From Macrostomum hystrix (taxonomy: Eukaryota; Animalia; Platyhelminthes): a stretch of DNA of 64,000 nucleotides. Shown piece after piece: positions 2,312 through 57,100 of the stretch; within the stretch, counting starts at the first letter, position 1, and the number at the start of each line of letters is the position of its first letter. The position numbers were made by a program, and so were the translations under genes. The stretch spans positions 2,356,001-2,420,000 of the forward strand of contig CATNEN010000041.1 in the NCBI GenBank assembly GCA_950097015.1. Direction: 5' to 3'. A model generated the notes under the pieces. That model searched no databases, had not been told where the DNA came from, and saw only the letters and a program-made list of their open reading frames with translations.

Positions 2312-3268
2312 ATGTCATGACAGCTAGTTTTCCCGAATCTCAGCGGATTTTGCCAGTTTTTTGTTTTTGAATTGAGGCTAGCATTGAACTAGCATTTTTA
2401 TCTATTCTAGTCCCAATAGATTGCAGAATCTTTATCAAAGCTACTCCATTACTGACTTCCCAGGGTGCCAGGGTGGTTGTTCCTGCATTTCCTCCTATAC
2501 CTAGTGCGATGCGACATGTTCATTTTATACTTTTTGTCTCTGCGGTGTTGGTCTTTCTTAATATTGTTATTTTGGTGCCGGCATTTTCTACCGTAAGCCA
2601 CCCTCAGTCCTGCCAATTGATCTCATTGTCTTCCGGAGCATAGCATAGAAATACACTGCTTTCCCAGGCCCCACTAATCAAACTGACTCGCTTACAACTC
2701 TCTCAGTCAGTAGGGGCGAACAGCCGGGAAATCGTTGGTCTTCTGTTTCCCTTTTTTAATTTTTTTGATCATTTTGAAACGCACTCGTACTAAGAAAAAA
2801 AATATAGAAGCAGCTCAATTATCGCTTCACATGTGATCAAAAGCTTTGTTTGTGTGCACAATGAATCATGGAAGCACTTTGTGAGACTGAAGATATTCAA
2901 CAGTTACTGTCTTGCGTACACACTCGAGTTTTCCTTGCTATTTTTGGGCTAGTTGACAAACGTGCGGGGATGACCTATGTTCACTGTACATTTAGTTCCT
3001 TGTGGCAATGCCACGGAATGCCCATGGCTAGTTTTAAGGCTTGTACACTGCCAATGAGGTCAGAGCACAGGATTGTACGTGTTTAATTTGACACCTAAAT
3101 TCAAACGATGTGAAGGATTTGAACGCACCTGTTTTCTGTCCAATGGCACATGGTCGAACCAGTTTTAAAATACTCAAAATGCTTTCGCGCAAGTAAAAAC
3201 TTGTGAATCTGTTTCAGAGGCTCGTCCAGACGGCTTTTTCTCAACTGTCCGACCCAGTGCAGCTGAGC

Positions 3269-4503
3269 ATGTCTTTAGAGCTGTCCCAGCGTGTGTCTGC
3301 TGCGCGGCCCCCTCAAGGCGCGACTGCCGACCCACCTGCAGTGCAGCAGCTGCTCCCAGCCCCTGTTCAACGGCTTCCAGACTCCGCACGGATGTCGCCT
3401 GTGCCAGCCCTGCGTCACCGGCCTGCTGTCACCGGTGGAGAAGCGGCGATGTCCCGGAAACACGGAGGCCTGCAGAGACACCACGGAGGAGATCGAGGTG
3501 AGCCAGGCCTCCTGTCTTCCCGACATTGCGACGAGACGTGAGGTCGGCCGACTGAAGGTCCTGTGTCCGAACCTGCGTGCCGGCTGCTCTGCTGCACTCA
3601 GCTGGTCTGTCATGGACCAGCATCTGGACAGCTGCGACTTCCAGGCTTTGCCGTGCGAGCTCTGCGGCCAGCAGGTGACGAGGAGGGACATGCAGCGTCA
3701 CTCAACCAGAGAGTGCCTGCAGAGGAAAGTGAGCTGTGAGCTGTGCTCTCAGCAGGTGCCCTTTGGTGAGATGGAGAGCAGGCACAGGAATCTGGAGTCC
3801 GATGTGTGCTGTCCGATGTTCTCAGCTGCCTGCCCTCACTGCGGTGACCGGAGCACTCCGATGAGCAGGACAGCATACCAGGCTCACCTGTCTGACTGTC
3901 CGGAGAAACCAGTCGAGTGCAAGTACTCTCACCTGGGCTGCCAGACAAGAGCCCGAAGGTCCGAGATGGATAAGCACTACACGGAGTGCATGGACTCTCA
4001 CCTGGAGCTCGTGGACTCAAGGCTCCGACAGGCCGCGGAGCTGCCTCAGACAGCAGGTGAGCGGCACTTTATGCCTATTGATTTTTAACAGTTATTGCTT
4101 ATTTTTATTGCCCGTAATTACATAATGACATTGCACAACGGCTATCTAATTCTGGCTGTCCTGACGCGCCCGCATCGCTCCTTCATTTCCAGCAGTCGCA
4201 ATGCCGCAGTTTTCCACCAGTTCGGCGACTTCTGTCGAAAGCGGCGAGGTGGCCGACGTGAAGCGGCGAGTCGGCAGCGTGTACGACCAGGTCAAGAGGC
4301 TGCAGGTGAACGTGGCCAACTGGGCGCACAGCACAATGGAGCTCGAGCAGATGGCAGACCGGTTCGGCGGCGTGTCGCAGCTCCGGACTCTGCTGGCTCA
4401 GCTGGATGAGCGCACGAGAAATATTGAACAGCTGCAGCAGCAGCTGCAGCAACAGGTGCAGCAGCTGCAGCAGGATAGGACGCTTCCTAATTTGGAGGAT
4501 TAA
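3269..4503 (+). pseudogene. TRAF-like copy 1 (RING, TRAF zinc fingers, coiled coil, no MATH), frameshifted; exons 3269-4056 and 4193-4503
   Basis: ATG at 3269 (MSLELSQRV). A 2-bp deletion near 3328 (actgccg versus actgtgccg in the other copies) shifts the frame before the RING. The downstream frame encodes CSSC...HGCRLCQPC...RRCP and CELC/CPHC zinc fingers; phase-1 intron 4057-4192; exon 2 coiled coil ends TAA. The deletion could be a sequencing error. Confidence 0.8.
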
Positions 4504-24680: not shown

Positions 24681-25519
24681 TAGGGTGATGCTTAGCCGTT
24701 AATTATAAAAATGCACAAAACGCAAAAGCAAGACATGCAGGTAGCCTACTACGAGGAGTAGACATTGGCTACTCGTATATAATACATTTTTTTATTCCCT
24801 AGAAATGCAACCGCAGCAACTCATGGAACGCATTAGAAGATGTTTGGTAAATTTGTGTAGGGAGCGCTGAGCAGTTGACGAAAAAAGCAGCAACAGAGAA
24901 GGGGCTTAAGGGCGTGCAAGCGAGTTCCTGTGTACAGTATCTGTGTTGTGAGCTGCGTCTCACAATGACCTTGCTCCGACCCCTGCGTCTCTAAGCCGGC
25001 CACCTGCTCAATCCAGTTCTGCCCGGCCCCGGCTTAGGCCACCCTCCTTTATCGTTGTTTGTCGCTCGCCCATTGGCTGCCCTCTGCGCCGTCTTCGCTA
25101 GTCCAATCAGGCCTCTCGCAAAGGAGTTATTCATTGACCGTGCTCAAACCTTGTTCCTCTGCCCGACCTCTGCTGCTGCCAAAAGCTCATCATCATCATC
25201 CTTCTCCTCCAGAGTCTTCCCTCGAGTCTGCGAAGCGTCGGTACTCCTCCAGACCGTCATCCACCTCTCTCTGGCGCTGTCGAGTGGCTACCCGCTCGCA
25301 GTCAAAGCCTTCGCACATCCTTCTGTGATCTGTGATTCCGGGCTTAGCGAGTGTCTGTACGCTCCAAGCCCATCCCGTCTCTCCTCGGAGTGTCTGAACG
25401 CCTCGAGGGTCGCTGCTTCCCATCCCTCCTCCCCCGGCAAGCTTTGGGCGGTCCGTACCCGAACCCCGGCTACCGCGTCGGCGAACTGCCGACGGTACAG
25501 ATAAAGTACAACATATGTA

Positions 25520-25600
25520 CGTGGGTGCTCAGGAGTCAGCGAAATTGGCAGAATTGCCTCCTCGCTGGCTGCGGGTCCGGTGTCAACAAATGATGTGCCA
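25520..25600 (+). mobile_element. 3' fragment of the tRNA-derived SINE family
   Basis: gtgctcaggagtcagcgaaattggcagaattgcctcc is the reverse complement of the SINE tail at 38167-38205. Confidence 0.55.
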
Positions 25601-25870
25601 TTGCGTGCAGCCCTCCTGCAATCATTTTTATTAAGAAGCTTAAGACTTAGTTATAAAATGGCATGTGCAGATGAACTCTACAAATTTTAGTTTTTGGTGG
25701 AAGCGAAAATTGCGCGCGAATCTCGTGGCAATTTGAAAAAAGCATACATGTGAAAACCATGTTCAGGGTATCAAGGCGAATATCTTTCAATATAAGTATG
25801 GCTATGCAACTCGCGTGACTATTGTGTCCAACGCCACCAGAGCGTGTTGGAATCCTCTGCTGCCGAAGAG

Positions 25871-28428
25871 CTACCGAAGCTGCAACTGCAGGCAGAATGG
25901 GTGGCCTCTGGCGTCTCCCACCAGCAGTCGGAGGCCGGACCCCGCAGCTTCATCACCATCGTTAGGCAGCAGTCGCAGCTCCGTCACCTGGCAGTTGTGG
26001 CGATAGAAACCCACCTGGAGATTTACCAGGTGGCAAAATGATTCAAATAGCGAGTAGCTAAAAAAGAGAGAATATTTTAGATCAATAGCAAATATTTTTA
26101 TAGTCGGAGAGCTTGTAAATCATCTGAATCTTGTCTCGTAATAGCAAGAGAAACAGAAATCTCAAAAAATTTAGTAATTTCAAACGCAACAATGCAATTA
26201 ATGAGGACAGTTAAGAAACGTGCCTCAACAAGCTGACTGTCCAGAGCTCTTGCCTCCATGCGCCAGACGCTGACTTCACCACCAGCGGAGGCCGAGGCAA
26301 GAAACGGCAACGCGCCCGAGAGGTCATCGCTGAGCAGGCAGATGGCCGTCACAGGGTGGTTGTGAGCCTGAAGTCGTTGATTGTAGTGGGAGCAGATTGA
26401 GCTCATTATCTATTCCAACAACCATTAAAACAATCGTAATTAATTATGTTATTTTCTTATAACCTTCAAAGTTTTTAACAAGCCACACACTGCTTTGAAA
26501 ACCAAGACTGTCAGATTAGAAACCGACATTGCACTAAAAATGAAAAAATTACCAGGAATCCAATGACAACGGGACGGACTTGCAGGTCCGATTGGAATAT
26601 CCGGACGACTGAGAGTCGGCCAGGCCGCGGATTCGTGAAAACGAAGAAAGCGTCGCCGCGCGTTTCACCGGTTGCACAGGCTAGCATCAGAGTCGACGAG
26701 CTGGTGGGCACATCGAGCGGCTCAGAGGTCCGCAGCCCGATAACGGTTGCCGCACCCGGAAGAGCAGTTCGCAGTTGGGCTGAAGTCACTCCGGGGTTGT
26801 GAAGCTGCCGAATCAGCAGCTGGCCTTGCTCGGGAATCTGTAGGAATACAGGCGGGCCTGATTGTGGGTCCAAGGTGACCCGGATCGGCATCAGATCGCC
26901 ATCGACCGCCACCAGACACAGGCTACAGTCTTGGAATGCGACGAGGGCCTCGTCGGTTCCGGGCACGGCGCAGATGGCGGCCACTGGAGACACGCTTTGC
27001 AGCAAACACCCGGCTCCAGCGGAAAGCAAATCTAGCGGTTCGGTGTCGGGGCCACGAAGTGACCAGCACTGCAGGCTCTGACTGCCAAGTCTCATCAGAC
27101 CAAGACACTGCTGCCAGCAGACCAGCAAAGCGGATGTGCACAGACACGCCAGATGGGTCACTCCGCCCCACTGCGGCGCGGCTTTAAGTCTGTGCTGCAG
27201 GCTCATGGAATCGAGATGCCAAAGCAGTAAAAGTCCGTCTGCGCCACCTGTGATTACAATACTAATATCGCCAAGTCGGCAGAGACAAGCAATGTTTACT
27301 CGGCCATTGTGTCCCGGCCTGAGGCCCATCTCCACCTGCGGAAGATCAGCTGGTCTCTGCGACTGAACTAAGCAGCCAGCAGAGACTGAGTCGTCAGTGG
27401 ACTGAAAATTTTAATTCTCATTGCAACACTTGGCTCATACACGTATATTGGCACATTTTATTTATGCATTCACATCACTCACAAAACAGACTTCACCAAC
27501 TCCTCCCAGGGAGCGCCCTCTGCCGGGCAATGGCTGCGTCGCACTCCAGCCAGAATTGCTTGCATCAAACTGGGTTGGCTCAGCTGGCATGGGCAACTCA
27601 GCCAATCTGTGGTCGAATGAGCTGGCTGTTGCACTCACTGAGTCAGAGGACTGCCGTCCTCGAAAATTCTCTGTGAATCACAATTGCTCAATATAGTTCT
27701 TTCTTTTTATGCAGCTCAAAACATCCATCAGACAGTGCACTTTAAATGCAAAACCTACCTTGAATCAGCCTGCAATTCAGTCTCGCCGGACATTCGGACA
27801 GGTGAGCCAGGTACGAGTTTCTGTCGAGCCTTAGTCTCGGGCTTCGGCAGTGAGGGCAGGCAGCTGAGAACATCGGACAGCACACATCGGACTCCAGATT
27901 CCTGTGCCTGCTCTCCATCTCACCAAAGGGCACCTGCTGAGAGCACAGCTCACAGCTCACTTTCCTCTGCAGGCACTCTCTGGTTGAGTGGCGCTGCATG
28001 TCCCTCCTCGTCACCTGCTGGCCGCAGAGCTCGCAAGGCAAAGCCTGGAAGTCGCAGCTGTCCAGATGCTGGTCCATGAGAGACCAGCTGAGTGCGGCAG
28101 AGCAGCCGGCACGCAGGTTCGGACACAGGACCTTCAGTCGGCCGACCTCACGTCTCGTCGCAATGTCGGGAAGACAGGAGGCCTGGCTCACCTCGATCTC
28201 CTCCGTGGTGTCTCTGCAGGCCTCCGTGTTTCCGGGACATCGCCGCTTCTCCACCGGTGACAGCAGGCCGGTGACGCAGGGCTGGCACAGGCGACATCCG
28301 TGCGGAGTCTGGAAGCCGTTGAACAGGGGCTGGGAGCAGCTGCTGCACTGCAGGTGGGTCGGCACAGTCGCGTCTTGAGGGGGCCGCGCAGCAGACACAC
28401 GCTGGGACAGCTCTAAAGACATAGACAT
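25871..28428 (-). CDS. Chimeric gene model: TRAF-like copy 4 (RING plus zinc fingers) spliced to WD40 exons; exons 28422(28428)-27759, 27670-27483, 27401-26553, 26409-26224, 26014-25871; about 676 aa
   Basis: TRAF exon truncated after HLSECP runs into donor CAAG|gtaggt. Exon lengths 664, 188, 849, 186 and 144 keep one open frame. WD40 motifs GHNGRVNIACL..VITGGADGLLLLWHL, HNHPVTAICL..LASASAGGEVSVWRM and HNCQVTEL..LLVGDARG. Intron 4 needs a GC donor or a weak GT. The WD40 exons are well supported; the fusion transcript is inferred. Confidence 0.65.
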
Positions 28429-28950
28429 GCTCAGCTGCACTGGGTCGGACGGTTGAGAAAGCTGTCTGGATAGATGAGCCTCTGAAACATATTCACTAAT
28501 TTTTAGTTTGCGCGAAAGCATTTTGAGCAGTTTAAACTGGTTCGACCATGTGCCATTGGACAGAAAACAGGTGCGTTCAAATCCTTCACATCGTTTGAAT
28601 TTAGGTGTCAAATTAAACACGTACAATCCTGTGCTCTGACCTCGTTGGCAGTGTACAAGCCTTAAAACTAGCCATGGGCATTCCGTGACGATTACTTCAA
28701 GGCACTAAATGTACAGTGAACATAGGTCACCCCCGCCCGTTTGTCACTAGCCCAAAAATAGCAAGGAAAACTCGAGTGTGTACGCAAGACAGTAACTGTT
28801 GAATATCTTCAGTCTCACAAAGCGCTTCCATGATTCATTGTGCACACAAACAAAGCTTTTGATCACATGTGAAGCGATAATTGAGCTGTTTTTTTTATTT
28901 TTTTCTTAGTACGAGTACGTTTCAAAATGATCAAAAAAATAAAAAAAGGC
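27800..28950 (-). repeat. Inverted segmental duplication of about 2750-3850 (TRAF copy 1 plus about 500 bp of upstream flank)
   Basis: Non-coding flank is shared, e.g. tgatcattttgaaacgcactcgtactaagaaaaa and agctcaattatcgcttcacatgtgatcaaaagc in reverse complement. Confidence 0.9.
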
Positions 28951-29627
28951 ATTATTAAGGCATGTTCTGTTCTGAGGTACCTCCCTAATGTATTTTGGAT
29001 TAAAAAATACCTAGCCACAAATCAACCAACCACAAAACATTTTTTAGCCAAGGAGCCCAAAAAGGGAAGTGCAGTTTTCATAATAATCTGTGAAATCGCT
29101 TCTGCTACTACAAGTGGTAGTGGTGCTTTTGCAAAAACCTGTCCTACTGTGAAGTCTCATCTCGTACATTGTCTTGCTAGGGCACGAATTTCCTAATTGA
29201 ACGTCCGGGCAAGTGGTTTGACAATGAGACTGAATCTTTGGCTACTGGCTCTGTGATTTTAATTGACTAAATTGCGAGGGCCGAAGTCCCGAGCGGTTTG
29301 TTAAAAATACACTCCTTAAATCTATGCACGCCTGTACATCTCTTTTTCGCTTTATGATGATTGAAATGCATTCGATATTTAATGGACCTAACTTGACCAA
29401 ATTTAAACTTTGAACGTGCATTTTTGGAAGGGAAATTATCACTCTTTAATTTTGAATCTTTTAGCAGCAAGGGAATTTTATGAAGTGCTCATGCTGATGA
29501 AAATGCTTATGTAACTGCTGAAATTGAGAGATATACTCGTAGTTTGTCCGTTAAACTTCTTCTTTTTGAAATAAGAGAAAGTCATTGATATTTTTATTTA
29601 TACAGTCACAAAGGGTGTGTTGTAAGC

Positions 29628-37990: not shown

Positions 37991-38166
37991 GCCGATACTT
38001 TTTTACGCAAGATGTCTGGCATGTACACAAATCATAGCCGTGTACAATGAACCAATAAGCTGACAATAATAATAATTGCAGGAGTATCCGCTGTGATCCC
38101 GTCCAAACTCGGCAGGCCAAGAAAATTGGCACATCATTAGCTGACACTAGACCTGCACCCAGCAAG

Positions 38167-38452
38167 GAGGCAATTCTGCCCATTTCGCTGACTCCTGAGC
38201 ACACACGCACACAGATACCGTACGCAGGCACTCGCTCACACAGGTGTGTACATCTACCCTGACTTTCTCATCGTCAGGCAGTGTACACTGCCTCTGTGCC
38301 TTGCAGGTTGGCCCTTAAGGGCGCGGCTTGGCACGACAAGCCCCCACGCCTTCTCTCCGCGGCTGCGCCCCAAATGAATGTGGCCTCGGCGTGGAATCGA
38401 GCTCGGGGACCTTGGTGCGAGAGGCAAGCGCGTTAGACCGCTCAGCTACTCA
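38167..38452 (-). mobile_element. tRNA-derived SINE, best preserved copy
   Basis: Minus strand begins agtagctgagcggtctaacgcg (box-A-like) ... gagctcgattcc (box-B-like); non-tRNA body is shared with 56038-56290. Confidence 0.7.
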
Positions 38453-44446: not shown

Positions 44447-45637
44447 TGTGCTTGAGTTTTACGGTTTTCGTAAATCGCAGGACTCATAAAGAAGCCTCAG
44501 CTGCTATGTGGCTTCCATATTGTAGCCCAAATATTTATTCCTCAATTTGTTGAAGTGCCTCATGAGGTCAGAGCCAATGTGCCTTTAACAAGGTAGTTTT
44601 CGCTTTCATTTTACTCTTTGCAGCGAGTATGTCCTATTCTTTGGAATAGAACGAGGAATTACTATTCCTCGTAGGAATATATAGAATTTAGAATTCTTTG
44701 GAATTAATTTGGAATATATAGTTAAAGTTTTATCTTCAAGATTTCATCTTGAAGGACGTTGACACTGTATTCTAAAATGTTAAATTGCTTTGAATTTCTG
44801 AGGCAAAATTGCAGTCCGTATCGCGCCTGTACAGTTGTTGTGCTCAGTGTACTTGTCTATATTTAGAAATTATACTACAGCGATCAGAACTGCCATTCGC
44901 GAGGCTTCGCGTGTCTAAAAATAGAAGCACAAGTTGTAATAGAAGAAACCCCATTTAACAGCGCGGATGCATCACCGCCCATTGTGCTAGCCACTGGCCA
45001 CCTTGGTTTGCGCTGTCCTGGAACAGCATCGATTAGGATGCGGACGAGCCAGCTGAAATTTTCAAGCCAAAGACATTGCACAGATCCGGGTTGATGACGT
45101 GGGAGTTCAGCCTGTCTTAGGTAAAGACAATGAGCCAGCCATAAAGGGAATCTCACGACGACGCTTGTGAGCCGCAGCGCCCGCAGAGTGTCAGTCACTC
45201 GGCTACCACATGTAGCAATAATTTCAATAATTATCGTCATATCTTACTCTCCACGTACTGTCCGAAAGTACTTTTTGCGAATGGATATTTCCGCTATTCA
45301 ACGGTGATTCCCGTTCGAGGTGGTGAATACTATATAATATAATATACTTGTGGAATATATATAATATACGTTTACTGTACACAGTACCTCTAACTGTTTC
45401 CCTGAAGTTTCCCATACTCTATTTACGGAATAGTAGAAATATTTGCGAGTGGTTGCTAGGCAATTCACACAAACAAAAACTCAGCTTGTTCACTAGCTGA
45501 AACAAGCTTAAAACGTTTACCATCTAATGGCATAGAATCAGATCATTTTGCGCGAGACTGCAAATTAGTTAAACTGTTTCAAAAGCTAATCTATCCAGAC
45601 GGCTCTTTCTCAACCGTTCGACCCTGCGCAGCCGAGC

Positions 45638-47632
45638 ATGTCTTTCGAGCTGAACAAGCGAGTGTCAGGTGCGCGGCCTCCTCAAGGCGCGACTGTGCCG
45701 ACCCACCTGCAGTGCAGCAGCTGCTCCCAGCCCCTGTTCAACGGCTTCCAGACTCCGCACGGATGTCGCCTGTGCCAGCCCTGCGTCACCGGCCTGCTGT
45801 CACCGGTGGCGAAGCGGCGATGTCCCGGAAACATGGAGGCCTGCAGAGACACCACGGAGGAGATCGAGGTGAGCCAGGCCTCCTGTCTTCCCGACATTGC
45901 GACGAGACGCGAGGTCGGCCGACTGAAGGTCCTGTGTCCGAACCTGCGTGCCGGCTGCTCTGCCGCACTCAGCTGGTCTCTCATGGACCAGCATCTGGAC
46001 AGCTGCGACTTCCAGGCTTTGCCGTGCGAGCTCTGCGGCCAGCAGGTGACGAGGAGGGACATGCAGCGCCACTCAACCAGAGAGTGCCTGCAGAGGAAAG
46101 TGAGCTGTGAGCTGTGCTCTCAGCAGGTGCCCTTTGGTGAGATGGAGAGCAGGCACAGGAATCTGGAGTCCGATGTGTGCTGTCCGATGTTCTCAGCTGC
46201 CTGCCCTCACTGCAGTGACCGGAGCACTCCGATGAGCAGGACAGCATACCTGGCTCACCTGTCTGACTGTCCGGAGAAGGTTCAGCAGCAAGTTCAGCAG
46301 CAAGTTCAGCAGCAGGTTCAGCAGCAGGTTCAGCAGCAGGTTCAGCAGCAGGTTCAGCAGCAGGTTCAGCAGCAGGTTCAGCAGCAGGTTCAGCAGCAGG
46401 TTCAGCAGCAGGTTCAGCAGCAGGTTCAGCAGCAGGTTCAGCAGCAGGTTCAGCAGCAGGTTCAGCAGCAGGTTCAGCAGCAGGTTCAGCAGCAGGTTCA
46501 GCAGCAGGTTCAGCAGCAGGTTCAGCAGCAGGTTCAGCAGCAGGTTCAGCAGCAGGTTCAGCAGCAGGTTCAGCAGCAGGTTCAGCAGCAGGTTCAGCAG
46601 CAGGTTCAGCAGCAGGTTCAGCAGCAGGTTCAGCAGCAGGTTCAGCAGCAGGTTCAGCAGCAGGTTCAGCAGCAGGTTCAGCAGCAGGTTATGTGTGCTC
46701 TATCTATCGCTCTAAAGGGGACACTTTCAAAGGAGACACTTTCAAAGGAGACACTTTCAAAGGAGACACTTTCAAAGGAGACACTTTCAAAGGAGACACT
46801 TTCAAAGGAGACACTTTCAAAGGAGACACTTTCAAAGGAGACACTTTCAAAGGAGACACTTTCAAAGGAGACACTTTCAAAGGAGACACTTTCAAAGGAG
46901 ACACTTTCAAAGGAGACACTTTCAAAGGAGACACTTTCAAAGGAGACACTTTCAAAGGAGACACTTTCAAAGGAGACACTTTCAAAGGAGACACTTTCAA
47001 AGGAGACACTTTCAAAGGAGACACTTTCAAAGGAGACACTTTCAAAGGAGACACTTTCAAAGGAGACACTTTCAAAGGAGACACTTTCAAAGGAGACACT
47101 TTCAAAGGAGACACTTTCAAAGGAGACACTTTCAAAGGAGACACTTTCAAAGGAGACACTTTCAAAGGAGACACTTTCAAAGGAGACACTTTCAAAGGAG
47201 ACACTTTCAAAGGAGACACTTTCAAAGGAGACACTTTCAAAGGAGACACTTTCAAAGGAGACACTTTCAAAGGAGACACTTTCAAAGGAGACACTTTCAA
47301 AGGAGACACTTTCAAAGGAGACACTTTCAAAGGAGACACTTTCAAAGGAGACACTTTCAAAGGAGACACTTTCAAAGGAGACACTTTCAAAGGAGACACT
47401 TTCAAAGGAGACACTTTCAAAGGAGACACTTTCAAAGGAGACACTTTCAAAGGAGACACTTTCAAAGGAGACACTTTCAAAGGAGACACTTTCAAAGGAG
47501 ACACTTTCAAAGGAGACACTTTCAAAGGAGACACTTTCAAAGGAGACACTTTCAAAGGAGACACTTTGCCCATTCTGGGGCTTCCGTTTCATCGAAGGCA
47601 TGCAAATAGAAACTTTGAAAGACATAAACTAG
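45638..47632 (+). CDS. TRAF-like copy 7: RING and zinc fingers to HLSDCPEK, then in-frame (QQVQ)n and (SKETL)n repeats; probably truncated or non-functional
   Basis: 664-aa open frame; TRAF homology stops at 46279. Confidence 0.6.
   Translation: MSFELNKRVSGARPPQGATVPTHLQCSSCSQPLFNGFQTPHGCRLCQPCVTGLLSPVAKRRCPGNMEACRDTTEEIEVSQASCLPDIATRREVGRLKVLCPNLRAGCSAALSWSLMDQHLDSCDFQALPCELCGQQVTRRDMQRHSTRECLQRKVSCELCSQQVPFGEMESRHRNLESDVCCPMFSAACPHCSDRSTPMSRTAYLAHLSDCPEKVQQQVQQQVQQQVQQQVQQQVQQQVQQQVQQQVQQQVQQQVQQQVQQQVQQQVQQQVQQQVQQQVQQQVQQQVQQQVQQQVQQQVQQQVQQQVQQQVQQQVQQQVQQQVQQQVQQQVQQQVQQQVQQQVQQQVQQQVMCALSIALKGTLSKETLSKETLSKETLSKETLSKETLSKETLSKETLSKETLSKETLSKETLSKETLSKETLSKETLSKETLSKETLSKETLSKETLSKETLSKETLSKETLSKETLSKETLSKETLSKETLSKETLSKETLSKETLSKETLSKETLSKETLSKETLSKETLSKETLSKETLSKETLSKETLSKETLSKETLSKETLSKETLSKETLSKETLSKETLSKETLSKETLSKETLSKETLSKETLSKETLSKETLSKETLSKETLSKETLSKETLSKETLSKETLCPFWGFRFIEGMQIETLKDIN
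46280..46690. repeat. 12-bp repeat (gttcagcagcag)n, about 34 copies
   Basis: Directly visible; encodes VQQQ in the TRAF frame. Confidence 0.97.
46717..47567. repeat. 15-bp perfect repeat (gagacactttcaaag)n, about 56 copies
   Basis: Directly visible and homogeneous. Confidence 0.97.
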
Positions 47633-49845: not shown

Positions 49846-51456
49846 ATGTCACTTCAAGAACTGCCTCAGCGAGTGTCGGGTGCACGGCCCCATCAAGACG
49901 CGACTGTGCCGACCCACCTGCAGTGCAGCAGCTGCTCCCAGCCCCTGTTCAACGGCTTCCAGACTCCGCACGGATGTCGTCTGTGCCAGCCCTGCGTCAC
50001 CGGCCTGCTGTCACCGGTGGAGAAGCGGCGATGTCCCGGAAACACGGAGGCCTGCAGAGACACCACGGAGGAGATCGAGGTGAGCCAGGCCTCCTGTCTT
50101 CCCGACATTGCGACGAGACGTGAGGTCGGCCGACTGAAGGTCCTGTGTCCGAACCTGCGTGCCGGCTGCTCTGCCGCACTCAGCTGGTCTCTCATGGACC
50201 AGCATCTGGACAGCTGCGACTTCCAGGCTTTGCCGTGCGAGCTCTGCGGCCAGCAGGTGACGAGGAGGGACATGCAGCGCCACTCCAACAGAGAGTGCCT
50301 GCAGAGGAAGGAGCGATGCGGCAAGTGTACTCAACAGGTGATCATCAGCGAGATGGAGAGCAGGCACAGGAATCTGGAGTCCGATGTGTGCTGTCCGATG
50401 TTCTCGGCTGCCTGTCCTCACTGCCGCAATTCGAAAAGGAAATTCGATAGACGCGCGTACCTGGCCCACCTTTCAGAGTGCCCAGAGAGGCCAGTCGAGT
50501 GCAAGTACTATCGCCTGGGCTGCCGAGTGACAGTCTCTCGATCCGAGCTCGAAAAACACTACCGGGAGGGCTCGGACTCGCACATTTGTCTGCTGGATAT
50601 GAAGCTCAGGATGATTGGGTCTTCGTCTTCGACACCTCAGCCTAAACTTTCAGTGCCCTCTTCAAGCAGTCCCACTGAGATTTCCGATCTCAAGCGCCGG
50701 GTAGACTACATCAACTCGGCCTTCAAGAAGATGCAGGTCAGTGTGGCCAACTGGGCGCACACGATGCTTGAATTCGAGCAGTTGGCCGACAACTTCGGCG
50801 GCATCTCCCGGATGCGCGAGTCACTGCAGAGCTGTAGCGAGCGAGTTAGCCAGCTAGAGAGTCGCACTGGTGCTTCGAGACATCGCGTCGATGCTTTGCA
50901 AGCGTCGAGACCCGTGATGCTGCCGCAGGACTCTCAGCTGCAGCAGCTAGCGGGAAAGCTCGAGACTCGCCTGCTCAATCTGGAGAACACCAGCTACGAC
51001 GGCACCTTCATCTGGAGAGTGAGAAACCTCACGGAGAGCCGTTCACAGAAGCCAATCGAGTCGATTCCGTTCTTCCTTCGCCGATTCGGCCCCGCCTTCC
51101 GAATTCAATTGTACCTGAGTGGCGCGGGTGCAGGATCCGGCACTCACCTGTCCGTATACCTTGTGAACGTCCCTTACCAGCTTGATGACCCATCTGACTG
51201 GCCGATTGTTGCCGAGGCCACCTTCCGGCTAATAAATCTGAAAGATCGGCGACAAGACATTGTAAAGACCATTTCTATCAACACAGTCGACGAGAAGCGA
51301 CAGGCAGCTGAAGACGACTTCTTGATGTGCTGCGGGGAGCCCCGACTGCTGCCGCTTTCCGAGTTCAATGAGCGGTTCACCAAGGAGGACTGCTGCTTTC
51401 TCAAGGTGGAGGTCAGGGCAGTTGGTAGTGGGCGCGACCGCAGGACGGATCGATGA
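49846..51456 (+). CDS. Full-length intronless TRAF-family protein (RING, TRAF zinc fingers, coiled coil, MATH/TRAF-C), 536 aa; copy 8
   Basis: C-terminus LENTSYDGTFIWRV...IESIPFF...FRIQLYLSGAGAGSGTHLSVYL...DWP...TFRLIN...CGEPRLLPL..FTKEDCCFLKVEV is a TRAF-type MATH domain. No one-to-one ortholog assigned. Confidence 0.93.
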   Translation: MSLQELPQRVSGARPHQDATVPTHLQCSSCSQPLFNGFQTPHGCRLCQPCVTGLLSPVEKRRCPGNTEACRDTTEEIEVSQASCLPDIATRREVGRLKVLCPNLRAGCSAALSWSLMDQHLDSCDFQALPCELCGQQVTRRDMQRHSNRECLQRKERCGKCTQQVIISEMESRHRNLESDVCCPMFSAACPHCRNSKRKFDRRAYLAHLSECPERPVECKYYRLGCRVTVSRSELEKHYREGSDSHICLLDMKLRMIGSSSSTPQPKLSVPSSSSPTEISDLKRRVDYINSAFKKMQVSVANWAHTMLEFEQLADNFGGISRMRESLQSCSERVSQLESRTGASRHRVDALQASRPVMLPQDSQLQQLAGKLETRLLNLENTSYDGTFIWRVRNLTESRSQKPIESIPFFLRRFGPAFRIQLYLSGAGAGSGTHLSVYLVNVPYQLDDPSDWPIVAEATFRLINLKDRRQDIVKTISINTVDEKRQAAEDDFLMCCGEPRLLPLSEFNERFTKEDCCFLKVEVRAVGSGRDRRTDR

Positions 51457-54152: not shown

Positions 54153-57100
54153 ATGGTGATGGACCTCTGTAATCAGCAGGCTGAGAATAGGCCACAACTG
54201 CATAGGCCAATGACAATGAGTGATAGAAACCCATTCAGTGCACTGACTTCAGATAGCAAATTCTGCATCAATGAAGATGGCAGCAGTAGGCAGCATTGCA
54301 TGATAAGCACCTTTGATGAGCAGCTGGCTGCACTTGATGCCCTCATCCAGGCTCAGTGCCAGGCCCGACAAGGCATGAGGGTGCAAATTGAGCTGCTCCA
54401 GGACCACTATTTGAAGGTGCATTTTGAATTGATTTGATCCCTGCACCCTGATGAACTCAGAACCCTGCACCCTGATGAACTCACAACCCTGCACCCAGAT
54501 CAACTCAGAACCCTGCACCCTGATGAACTCAGAACCCTGCACCCTGATCAACTCACAACCCTGCACCCAGATCAACTCAGAACCCTGCACCCTGATCAAC
54601 TCAGAACCCTGCACCCTGATCAACTCACAACCCTGCACCCAGATCAACTCAGAACCCTGCACCCTGATCAACTCAGAACCCTGCACCCTGATCAACTCAG
54701 AACCCTGCACCCTGATCAACTCAGAACCCTGCACCCTGATCAACTCAAAACCCTGCACCCTGATCAACTCAGAACCCTGCACCCTGATCAACTCAGAACC
54801 CTGCACCCTGATCAACTCAGAACCCTGCACCCTGATCAACTCAGAACCCTGCACCCTGATCAACTCAGAACCCTGCACCCTGATCAACTCAGAACCCTGC
54901 ACCCTGATCAACTCAGAACCCTGCACCCTGATGAACTCACAACCCTGCATCCTGATCAACTCAGAACCCTGCACCCTGATGAACTCACAACCCTGCACCC
55001 TGATCAACTCAGAACCCTGCACCCTGATGAACTCACAACCCTGCACCCTGATCAACTCAGAACCCTGCACCCTGATCAACTCAAAACCCTGAGCTCCAAG
55101 CTGGCCTTTTGGCTCCGTTGTAGGTGTCAGCGGAGCTGCAGTCGGAGCGGCGGAGGCGGGAAGCGGCTGCGTCAGGCGGGGCAAGTGTCTGTGCGCAGGA
55201 GCTTGATGCGCTGCGCGATGAGGTGAGAAAAAAAAGAGTTTTACTTGTAGTTGGATATAGGAGTATAAATGGGATTAATACTACTAGCAGTAGCATTAAT
55301 TCCACCTGCCAAACAATGCTTATTTTAAATTTTATTCCCAAAATCGACAATCGTCTCAGCTGAGCCGCGAGTGGCACCGCAGCCGCTGCCAGGTTCAGGA
55401 GGCGGCCGCCGCCGCGGTGGCCCTGGCTGAGGCACGCGCCGAGGCCCAGCGGCAGCGGGTGCTGGCGGAATGCGCCGTTCGGCAGCTGGCCAGCCTCCGC
55501 AGTCGCTGCACGGAGCTGGAGGCGGCGCTGAGCCGCTTGGAGTCCAGCGTTGCGACGGCGCCGGCGAAGTCTGAGCGGGTAACACGCGGCTTGGCTGGCA
55601 AAATCCAACCGCTGAGCACTCAGCGAGAGCCCCCGGTGGAAACAAGTGATGGCGACGGCGTTTGCGTTTCGCCCGAATGCGCCGCCGCGCTTCGCCTTCA
55701 GAAGCGCAACGCCGAACGCCTGGCGCAGGAGGTCAGGCGGCTACAACTGCTGCTGGCCGCCAACGACGCAGCCGCGGCTTCCGCGCCGACCGCAACCGTC
55801 GCTAGTCCCGCGTCGACGGCGTCAGCAGCCGCCGCGTCGACTTCGAATTCAACTGCTCCAACCACCGGTGCCGCTAAGCGCATTGAAAAGCGACCGCTCT
55901 CTGTATCGGGCAGCCGACCGGCTCGACAGCAGCAGCAGCCTCACAAGCAGCTGGTATGCAATGCAAAAATATTAATTATTGCAGGCGGGCTGCGGGCAAT
56001 GGCACATAATTTGTGGACACTAGACCTGCAGCCAGCGCGAGGGCAATTCTTCCCATTCTGCTGACTCCTGAGCACACACGCACACAGATACCGTACGCAA
56101 GCATACGCTCACACAGGTGTGTACATCCGCCCTGACTTTCTCATCGTCAGGCGGTGTACACTCTCACTGTGCCTTGGAGGTTGGCCCTCAAGGGCGTAAA
56201 TTGGACAGACAAGCCCCAGAACTCTTTGGCCTGGCTGCGGAATCGAGCTCAGGCACCTTGGTGCGAGAGGCAATCGCGTTAACCGCTCTGTCATCACCCC
56301 CAGATATGCAAAGTCATCGGATGATGAGGCACTAGTATTACTCGTATTTATTGGCAGTAACCATTCGCTCTCGCTATTGACCAGGTTTCAACTCGTCTCT
56401 CTTTCCGTGTCTTGTTTAGGCCCAGAGGCCGGCATCGGTGAATGTCAAGAACGGCGCCAGCTCAACCGAGAAGAAGAAATCTGCTCAGCGACCGGAAATT
56501 AGTGAGTCTTGCATCCTGCTCTAGTCTCCTTGGTGACATTTCCTTTATCGCTATCCCGCCTCCCATTCGCAGAGGACGCTGGCAGCTCTGACTCAGCCGC
56601 GGTCGCCAGCCCGGAGGCCCTGCTGCACTGGGTGGCCGGCTTGCCTGACCGCTTCAACAAGCAGCTGCATGCGCTGGTGAGCCCGGAGGCGCCCTCCGAG
56701 CAGGTCGGCCCCGCCCTGCTGCTCGATTGCCCGGTGCCGCCGCCTGGCGTGGACCCCGAGATAGCCAGCCGCCAGGTTGTGGACTGGCTGGTGCGGCTGT
56801 GGAATGGCCGCCTGCTGCGCATTGTGGCCGCCAGCCTGACCCGCCGGCTGCCGCACAGCGCGGGCGGCACCGTGCTGTACTACTTTGTGCAGCAGCTGCT
56901 GGACACCGGCTGCCCCCTGCCTGCCAGGCAGCGGACCGACTTCCTGCGCCGCCTGGACGGCTTCCCTGGCAACGGCCGACTGCGGCAGGATGTGCACCAG
57001 GTGGGCGGCTGAGCTGCTGATTCACAGCTCCTCATCACCCATCTTCTAATTAACCTTCAGCCAGTCACCCATCAGCCAATCACCCATCAGCCAATCACCC

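Follow-up and report, generated by a model that had tools for sequence, protein, structure and literature searches.

A truncated TRAF gene and a divergent WD40-like gene in Macrostomum hystrix: more probably two packed neighbours than one TRAF7-like fusion

TRAF7 is composed of a RING, a TRAF zinc finger, a coiled coil and seven WD40 repeats, and coiled coils are needed for TRAF trimerisation. Chimeric genes such as jingwei and TRIM5-CypA were born by partial duplication. A stretch of 64,000 nucleotides (nt) of the flatworm Macrostomum hystrix (contig CATNEN010000041.1, positions 2,356,001 to 2,420,000; hereafter the window, in whose numbering all positions are given) carries a family of TRAF-type genes, one of which, copy 4, loses its homology to the others at a breakpoint and is followed on the same strand by WD40-like exons. 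A preliminary description, made from the sequence alone, joined the two into a single gene of TRAF7-like architecture. In flatworms, planarians are known for a large TRAF expansion (PMC6109357). In Macrostomum lignano a 35-nt spliced leader ending in TTATTGCATG is found on 30% of genes, and operons, in which spacers are most often ~100 bp, hold 15% of genes; the splice motif is GT[G/A]AG at cis donors and [T/C]TNCAG at trans acceptors (PMC8629364).

The locus is best read, at somewhat better than even confidence, as two tightly packed minus-strand transcription units and not as an obligate fusion (Table 1). The upstream gene, copy 4, would be a shortened gene from a tandem TRAF family in which gene conversion keeps the 5' modules similar. 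It would be spliced over an 88-nt intron to a 188-nt exon coding for a disordered tail, and its frame would close after codon 292 at a TAA overlapping an AATAAA, the putative polyadenylation site. Its product could be a non-trimerising ligase, a decoy, or merely a transcribed relic. The downstream gene would begin about 20-60 nt beyond and encode a genus-restricted, divergent WD40-like beta-propeller of 354 amino acids (aa) from a predicted start at ATG 27329; it would have three exons and two verified introns, with a predicted transcript 5' end at or upstream of 27440. It may be the downstream cistron of a spliced-leader-resolved operon, or may have a compact promoter of its own. Two genes are preferred because the halves of the locus are mutually exclusive in the contigs of three runs, because one contig reads through the acceptor that a fusion would use, because a stop codon and a poly(A) signal stand right after exon 2, and because the propeller has its own well-placed ATG, from which 354 aa is a natural propeller size.

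The evidence comes from three RNA runs, X1 (organism A), X3 and X6, and one DNA run, X7 (organism C), all as assembled contigs, not raw reads. X3 and X6 are taken as RNA because they contain spliced contigs and have zero depth in introns and intergenic DNA. Two joints had been put forward for checking. The first, 27759/27670, is present in X1, where a 244-nt contig joins 27890-27759 (132 nt on the TRAF side, including the last 22 nt that are specific to copy 4) to 27670-27559 (112 nt of exon 2) across a GT-AG intron. Use of this intron implies that the TRAF promoter drives transcription into exon 2. Of the proposal that a TRAF 5' end captured the exons of a WD40 gene, splicing of the TRAF exon past the breakpoint to exon 2 is supported, and capture of the WD40-like exons is not: no contig joins exon 2 to the WD40-like exons, and the second joint, 27483/27401, is absent from the contigs of all three RNA runs. 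In X1 the spliced contig of exons 1 and 2 has a depth of 5.6, and the depth is zero over all 1137 nt of exons 3-5. X3 and X6 show the reverse: spliced contigs cover exons 3-5 at a depth of 2-5, and neither exon 2 nor the part of exon 1 that is specific to copy 4 has any depth; their TRAF contigs that reach the breakpoint continue into the sequence of paralogues, leaving loose ends at 27786. This lack of co-detection argues for separate promoters or very different mRNA stability.

One X3 contig (27117-27440) enters the 81-nt interval between exons 2 and 3: it is colinear with the genome and runs unspliced for 39 nt past the 27401 acceptor; its 5' end lies 17 nt beyond the AATAAA. If exon 2 is left unspliced at 27483, the TRAF frame stops six codons after it, at TAA 27464-27462, and the product has 292 aa. 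The TAA overlaps AATAAA 27462-27457, beyond which lies a GU-rich stretch. In the reading frame of exon 3 a stop occurs 12 nt upstream of the 27401 acceptor, and the frame's own ATG at 27329 stands seven codons ahead of the first GH...WH repeat and opens a 354-aa product. The present RNA evidence leaves a TRAF-WD40 fusion protein unproven and makes two neighbouring genes the likelier reading.

Leader trans-splicing operates in the TRAF cluster. In one X1 RNA contig, ATTGCATG, with which the M. lignano leader ends (8 nt), is attached to a copy-1-like TRAF transcript at its TTTCAG acceptor (~3236), about 55 nt upstream of the start codon. This leader-bearing contig, placed at 28053-28460, was considered as a copy 4 transcript and proved to be copy-1-like. 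Copy 4 has a TTTCAG of its own (AG at 28483-28482), which is likely its spliced-leader acceptor, as judged from the copy-1-like transcript. The spacing between the two genes is of operon type: from the stop at 27462 to the acceptor at 27401 there are 60 nt on the same strand, compared with the <1 kb, typically ~100 bp, used to define operons (PMC8629364). No leader-bearing end at 27401 is found among the loose ends listed, and one contig passes this acceptor unspliced.

Several observations weigh against two separate genes. The 81-nt interval begins with a consensus donor (GTGAGT), ends in a good acceptor (TTTCAG) and can be removed without shifting the frame; roughly estimated, the probability that splice sites and frame coincide in this way is a few per cent. 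The fusion frame is the only one in which exon 2 stays open over its 62 codons. By a rule quoted in PMC8629364, an acceptor that has a donor upstream in cis is normally used for cis-splicing. Contigs can demonstrate presence but not absence, and depth is low (2-6). The three M. lignano homologues of the WD40-like gene are all 5'-incomplete models, so their N-termini are lacking from the comparison.

In a true chimeric gene, one mRNA would encode 664 aa: the RING and its three TRAF fingers, then a flexible linker of 62 aa, then the WD40-like propeller. This is possible, though doubtful. The protein would tentatively join an E3 ligase module to a new substrate-binding domain, and could be the constitutive product or an alternative to the short form, the 27483 donor competing with the AATAAA 20 nt downstream. 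The five exons hand-spliced in the preliminary description (664+188+849+186+144 nt) do form a single open frame of 676 aa, or 678 aa from the first ATG at 28428. The acceptor proposed for exon 4, 26409, is wrong: an RNA contig places it 42 nt further on, at 26368/26367, so that the exon has 144 nt and the product 14 residues fewer, and the fused frame becomes 664 aa. Three of the four proposed introns are thus verified, one of them with a corrected acceptor. A chimera is also in keeping with the actual use of intron 1, with the fit of the GTGAGT and TTTCAG ends to the cis-splice motifs reported for M. lignano (PMC8629364), and with the working donor and intron that the sequence past the breakpoint already had, as expected if the TRAF piece had inserted into the first exon of a gene already in place. 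In keeping with it too, both differences listed for copy 4 between organisms A and C are synonymous. Against it stand the missing 27483/27401 joint, the mutually exclusive coverage and the read-through contig described above. Moreover, hand-splicing gave a junction at 26409 that was in frame and nevertheless wrong, so an open frame by itself is weak evidence.

A regulated version of the chimera is rather unlikely. Here the 81-nt interval would act as a switch, in which the GTGAGT donor at 27483 competes with the AATAAA 20 nt downstream: when the donor wins, for example when the TRAF promoter is induced, the 664-aa ligase would be made, and otherwise a short TRAF and a free propeller. If this were true, a gene-converted TRAF module and a propeller specific to Macrostomum would have come together, independently of TRAF7, as a counterpart to it.

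Table 1. Features of the copy 4 and WD40-like locus and of the surrounding TRAF family in the window.
Feature	Position	Strand	Evidence and remarks
Upstream flank of copy 4, shared with copy 1	28482..28949	-	blastn; ends in TTTCAG acceptor (AG 28483-28482)
Exon 1, TRAF RING and TRAF-type zinc fingers	27759..28428	-	Pfam, tblastn, blastn, structure match
Intron 1, 88 nt, GT-AG, verified	27671..27758	-	X1 RNA contig
Exon 2, 188 nt, S/G/P-rich tail or linker	27483..27670	-	open only in exon 1 frame
81-nt interval, intron 2 (GTGAGT...TTTCAG, in frame) or intergenic spacer	27402..27482	-	sequence
First coding exon of the WD40-like gene (exon 3 of the preliminary description)	26553..27401	-	X3 and X6 RNA contigs
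Intron, 185 nt, GT-AG, verified	26368..26552	-	X3 contig joining 26553/26367
Second WD40-like exon (exon 4), 144 nt, best Pfam WD40 repeat	26224..26367	-	RNA contig, Pfam
Intron, 209 nt, GC-AG, verified	26015..26223	-	X6 contig skipping 209 nt, 26224/26014
Last exon (exon 5)	25575..26014	-	coding to TAG 25873-25871, then at least 296 nt of 3' untranslated region; X3 contig 25575-25940
TRAF 5' module starts	3291, 16873, 21180, 28428 (copy 4), 36861, 44440, 45635, 49846	+, -, -, -, -, -, +, +	tblastn

Exon 1 of copy 4 is a genuine TRAF RING-finger module with three complete TRAF-type fingers. Its closest named proteins are TRAF-type proteins of M. lignano (57% identity), Pfam recognises zf-TRAF (PF02176) at 31.3 bits against a cut-off of 27, and residues 22-173 align to the TRAF6 RING-zinc-finger structures 5vo0 and 3hcs with an expectation value (E) of 1e-12 (phmmer). 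The preliminary description had the RING exon nearly identical to its neighbours and sharing an upstream flank with copy 1, and both statements stand: copy 4 (28428-27760) has 90-94% nucleotide identity to all other copies (blastn), and the flank, out to 28949, is common only to copies 4 and 1, at 93.8% over 1179 nt (2750-3909 in copy 1; blastn). It was likewise right that copy 4 stops after HLSECP. Homology to all seven paralogues ends there, at 27781 (±2), with the blastn alignments stopping at 27780-27783, directly after the last metal ligand of a finger whose C-x2-C...H-x3-C pattern is complete at HLSEC, so that whole fingers are left. The data support copy 4 as a promoter-bearing partial TRAF copy of ~1.17 kb (28949-27781) that abuts foreign sequence. 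The paralogues remain alike for ~94 nt beyond this point and then enter their coiled-coil region; copy 4 thus lacks the coiled coil (TRAF-N), and no MATH (TRAF-C) domain is found by Pfam in the five hand-spliced exons. The strong donor CAAG/GTAGGT is present at 27759/27758, at a distance of seven codons and one base from HLSECP, rather than the ten unrelated codons first counted. The last 22 nt of exon 1 are unrelated to the paralogues (best ~56% alike). The 62-aa product of exon 2 matches no Pfam family, and no further copy of exon 2 is found in the window.

The window is eukaryotic DNA whose GT-AG introns are short, and a tblastn search with exon 1 finds eight TRAF 5' modules in it. The neighbours of copy 4 had been described as MATH-type; a MATH domain is detectable only in copy 8 (49846-51453), and the other neighbours are RING-finger-coiled-coil genes. 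The 5' ~730 nt of the copies (3291-50600) are 84-94% alike, and ~99% alike in the first 380 nt, whereas the 3' halves have a protein identity of merely 32-56%. In a 570-nt codon alignment of the eight copies the first ~380 nt are almost identical, at synonymous sites too, and the differences are grouped in two cassettes that are combined differently among copies. Cassettes in different combinations together with near-identical synonymous sites are a signature of gene conversion, which is the likely cause of the near-identity. The pattern points to concerted evolution that would be confined to the RING-finger module. Since the module is homogenised across all eight copies, the near-identity of copy 4 is uninformative on the date of its truncation, and the claim that the fusion was recent does not follow from it.

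Copy 7 (45635-47629, plus strand) loses its homology within ~10 nt of the copy 4 breakpoint, after DCPEK. Its frame stays open into a tandem array of 12-nt units (34 copies, 46278-46690), followed by one of 15-nt units (57 copies, 46714-47567). Copy 7 is a second case of the 5' module placed before foreign 3' sequence at the same cut point. In the RING of all eight copies (for example 28340-28290 on the minus strand) metal-ligand positions 3 and 4 read H-G-C (QTPHGCRLC); these two ligands appear swapped relative to the C-G-H of TRAF6. The large neighbouring open reading frames give only low-complexity noise in Pfam.

That copy 4 is a dead relic, open only through overwriting by gene conversion from its neighbours, is improbable. 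Having kept a promoter and adjoining old splice sites, it would still be transcribed and spliced and yield no useful protein, and the WD40-like gene would be unaffected. The mosaic identity indicates ongoing conversion, in which long tracts hardly differ even at synonymous sites. With the truncation the coiled coil is lost, and in copy 7 the cut lies no more than ~10 nt from that of copy 4 and is followed by tandem repeats. A relic is harder to reconcile with organism A, which at ~1-2% divergence has the same junction and splice and differs in the listed positions only synonymously, with a cut that falls exactly after the last metal ligand of a finger, and with an exon 2 that is open in the right frame.

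An assembly artefact joining a TRAF copy to an unrelated locus at ~27781, of the kind that assemblers can create in clusters of near-identical paralogues, is extremely improbable, since a 2234-nt X7 DNA contig (25593-27826) crosses the breakpoint with zero mismatches and 46 nt on the TRAF side, and an RNA contig from another organism label and a separate study crosses it too, even if X7 may be the source sample of the assembly. The junction near 27785 named in the preliminary description is therefore real DNA. It is present in both organism C and organism A (X1 RNA contig; 1-2% diverged). By manual alignment the 22 nt past the breakpoint have ~56% identity to the next finger, with one gap, and could be read as a weak, diverged finger remnant; such a remnant would suit an older event with subsequent overwriting of the 5' part, a reading that we give little weight.

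The WD40-like gene, which under the preferred two-gene reading stands on its own, is accepted here as a very divergent WD40-like propeller restricted to Macrostomum. The WD40 repeats announced in the preliminary description are recognisable only in part. Many multi-WD40 proteins are matched (best E 1.7e-26), always through one clear repeat at residues ~29-66 of exon 3. The Pfam WD40 score is 18 bits against a cut-off of 27, with one or two repeats recognisable and the match in exon 4 below threshold; the remaining repeats are unrecognisable by sequence in Pfam and protein searches. The only specific relatives are three M. lignano proteins (278-311 aa, all without a start; A0A1I8G632 and A0A1I8G7W2 are accessions of this gene) at 40% identity. 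They align from exon 3 residue 70 to the end of the gene, and the aligned part contains no TRAF sequence. This alignment also fits the shorter form of exon 4 (VLTDFM/CHTRPIR in one sequence and VVIGFL/AHNHPVT in the other), and the 209-nt intron has a known splice-site pair, GC-AG, only in the +1 register. When exon 3 was compared with word-indexed proteins of 156-495 aa, no match reached E <= 0.001, and neither transcript-derived proteins nor orthologues came up; a similar search with the M. lignano WD40-like fragment returned only itself and one paralogue, both 5'-incomplete, and a profile search of the WD40-like alignment against PDB gave no match.

AlphaFold gives a useless model for exon 3 alone (predicted local distance difference test score, pLDDT, 31.6) and a mediocre one for the M. 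lignano homologue (pLDDT 55.7, predicted template-modelling score 0.54). Among the top 50 Foldseek matches of the latter in PDB all are, by entry titles, apparently beta-propellers, mostly WD40 (E 1e-6 to 4e-5), with template-modelling scores of only 0.2-0.43. All matches to exon 3 by language-model atlas features are beta-propellers, with a top score of 0.96.

A TRAF locus of M. lignano (NIVC01000672.1, 44605-77298) has five tandem TRAF copies in 32.7 kb and no WD40-like gene. The gene models deposited there are 9-12 kb long and seem to combine exons from adjacent copies. The tail of an M. lignano TRAF (...SGGADLML) resembles the start of the first WD repeat; two stop codons come next in the genome, and the likeness is taken as a chance match. 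This TRAF and the WD40-like fragment have close UniProt accession numbers, only a hint of linkage. An X3 contig differs from the window in the 3' untranslated region of the WD40-like gene by 15 missing nt and one extra G (25738 and 25784), and by three amino-acid-changing differences in the WD40-like exons. The gene is polymorphic or fast-evolving. Just past this 3' untranslated region lies a short element of very high copy number (25462-25615; also 38127-38211 and 55968-56084), whose summed contig depth is ~393,000 in X7, compared with 88 for its flanks, and is high in X3 and X6 too. Rfam finds nothing in 25000-29000 or in this element.

Compared with the expanded TRAF families of flatworms, the window is similar in being a tandem cluster, here of eight TRAF-type genes, and M. 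lignano has a comparable cluster of five copies in 33 kb. It differs in that seven of the eight copies have no MATH domain, and in that the 5' module is homogenised while the 3' ends differ. The locus thereby shows a TRAF 5' module, evidently gene-converted, that is repeatedly cut at the same point before different 3' ends (copies 4 and 7).

With the spliced-leader operons of M. lignano the locus shares the common strand, the ~60 nt from stop and AATAAA to a TTNCAG acceptor, and the use of the leader in the TRAF family; unlike them, it shows no leader on the WD40-like transcript among the contig ends listed, and the two genes are not co-detected in the same runs. For the annotation of compact trans-spliced genomes this is a caution, as hand-splicing can link a gene's 3' end in frame to the acceptor of its neighbour. 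As in jingwei and TRIM5-CypA, a promoter-bearing 5' fragment stands before foreign exons and is spliced to at least one of them, but the verified chimeric transcript reaches only a 62-codon exon and not the domain-bearing neighbour gene.

The TRAF7-like architecture first proposed differs from TRAF7 itself in several respects. No coiled coil follows the fingers: in its place is a P/G/S-rich stretch of 62 aa that matches no family, and to which no coiled-coil predictor was applied. The propeller is barely recognisable as WD40 and its specific relatives are all from Macrostomum, TRAF6 is the solved structure nearest to the RING-finger part, and the single polypeptide is only an open frame on paper, no RNA contig joining the halves. 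If the 27483/27401 splice is used, however, the order of RING, TRAF fingers and WD40-like propeller, with MATH replaced, is that of TRAF7. A fusion of this kind would be a clear case of convergent domain architecture and a second origin of the TRAF7 layout, and it would add a young E3 ligase, equipped with a new substrate-binding domain, to an expanding cluster of immune-type genes.

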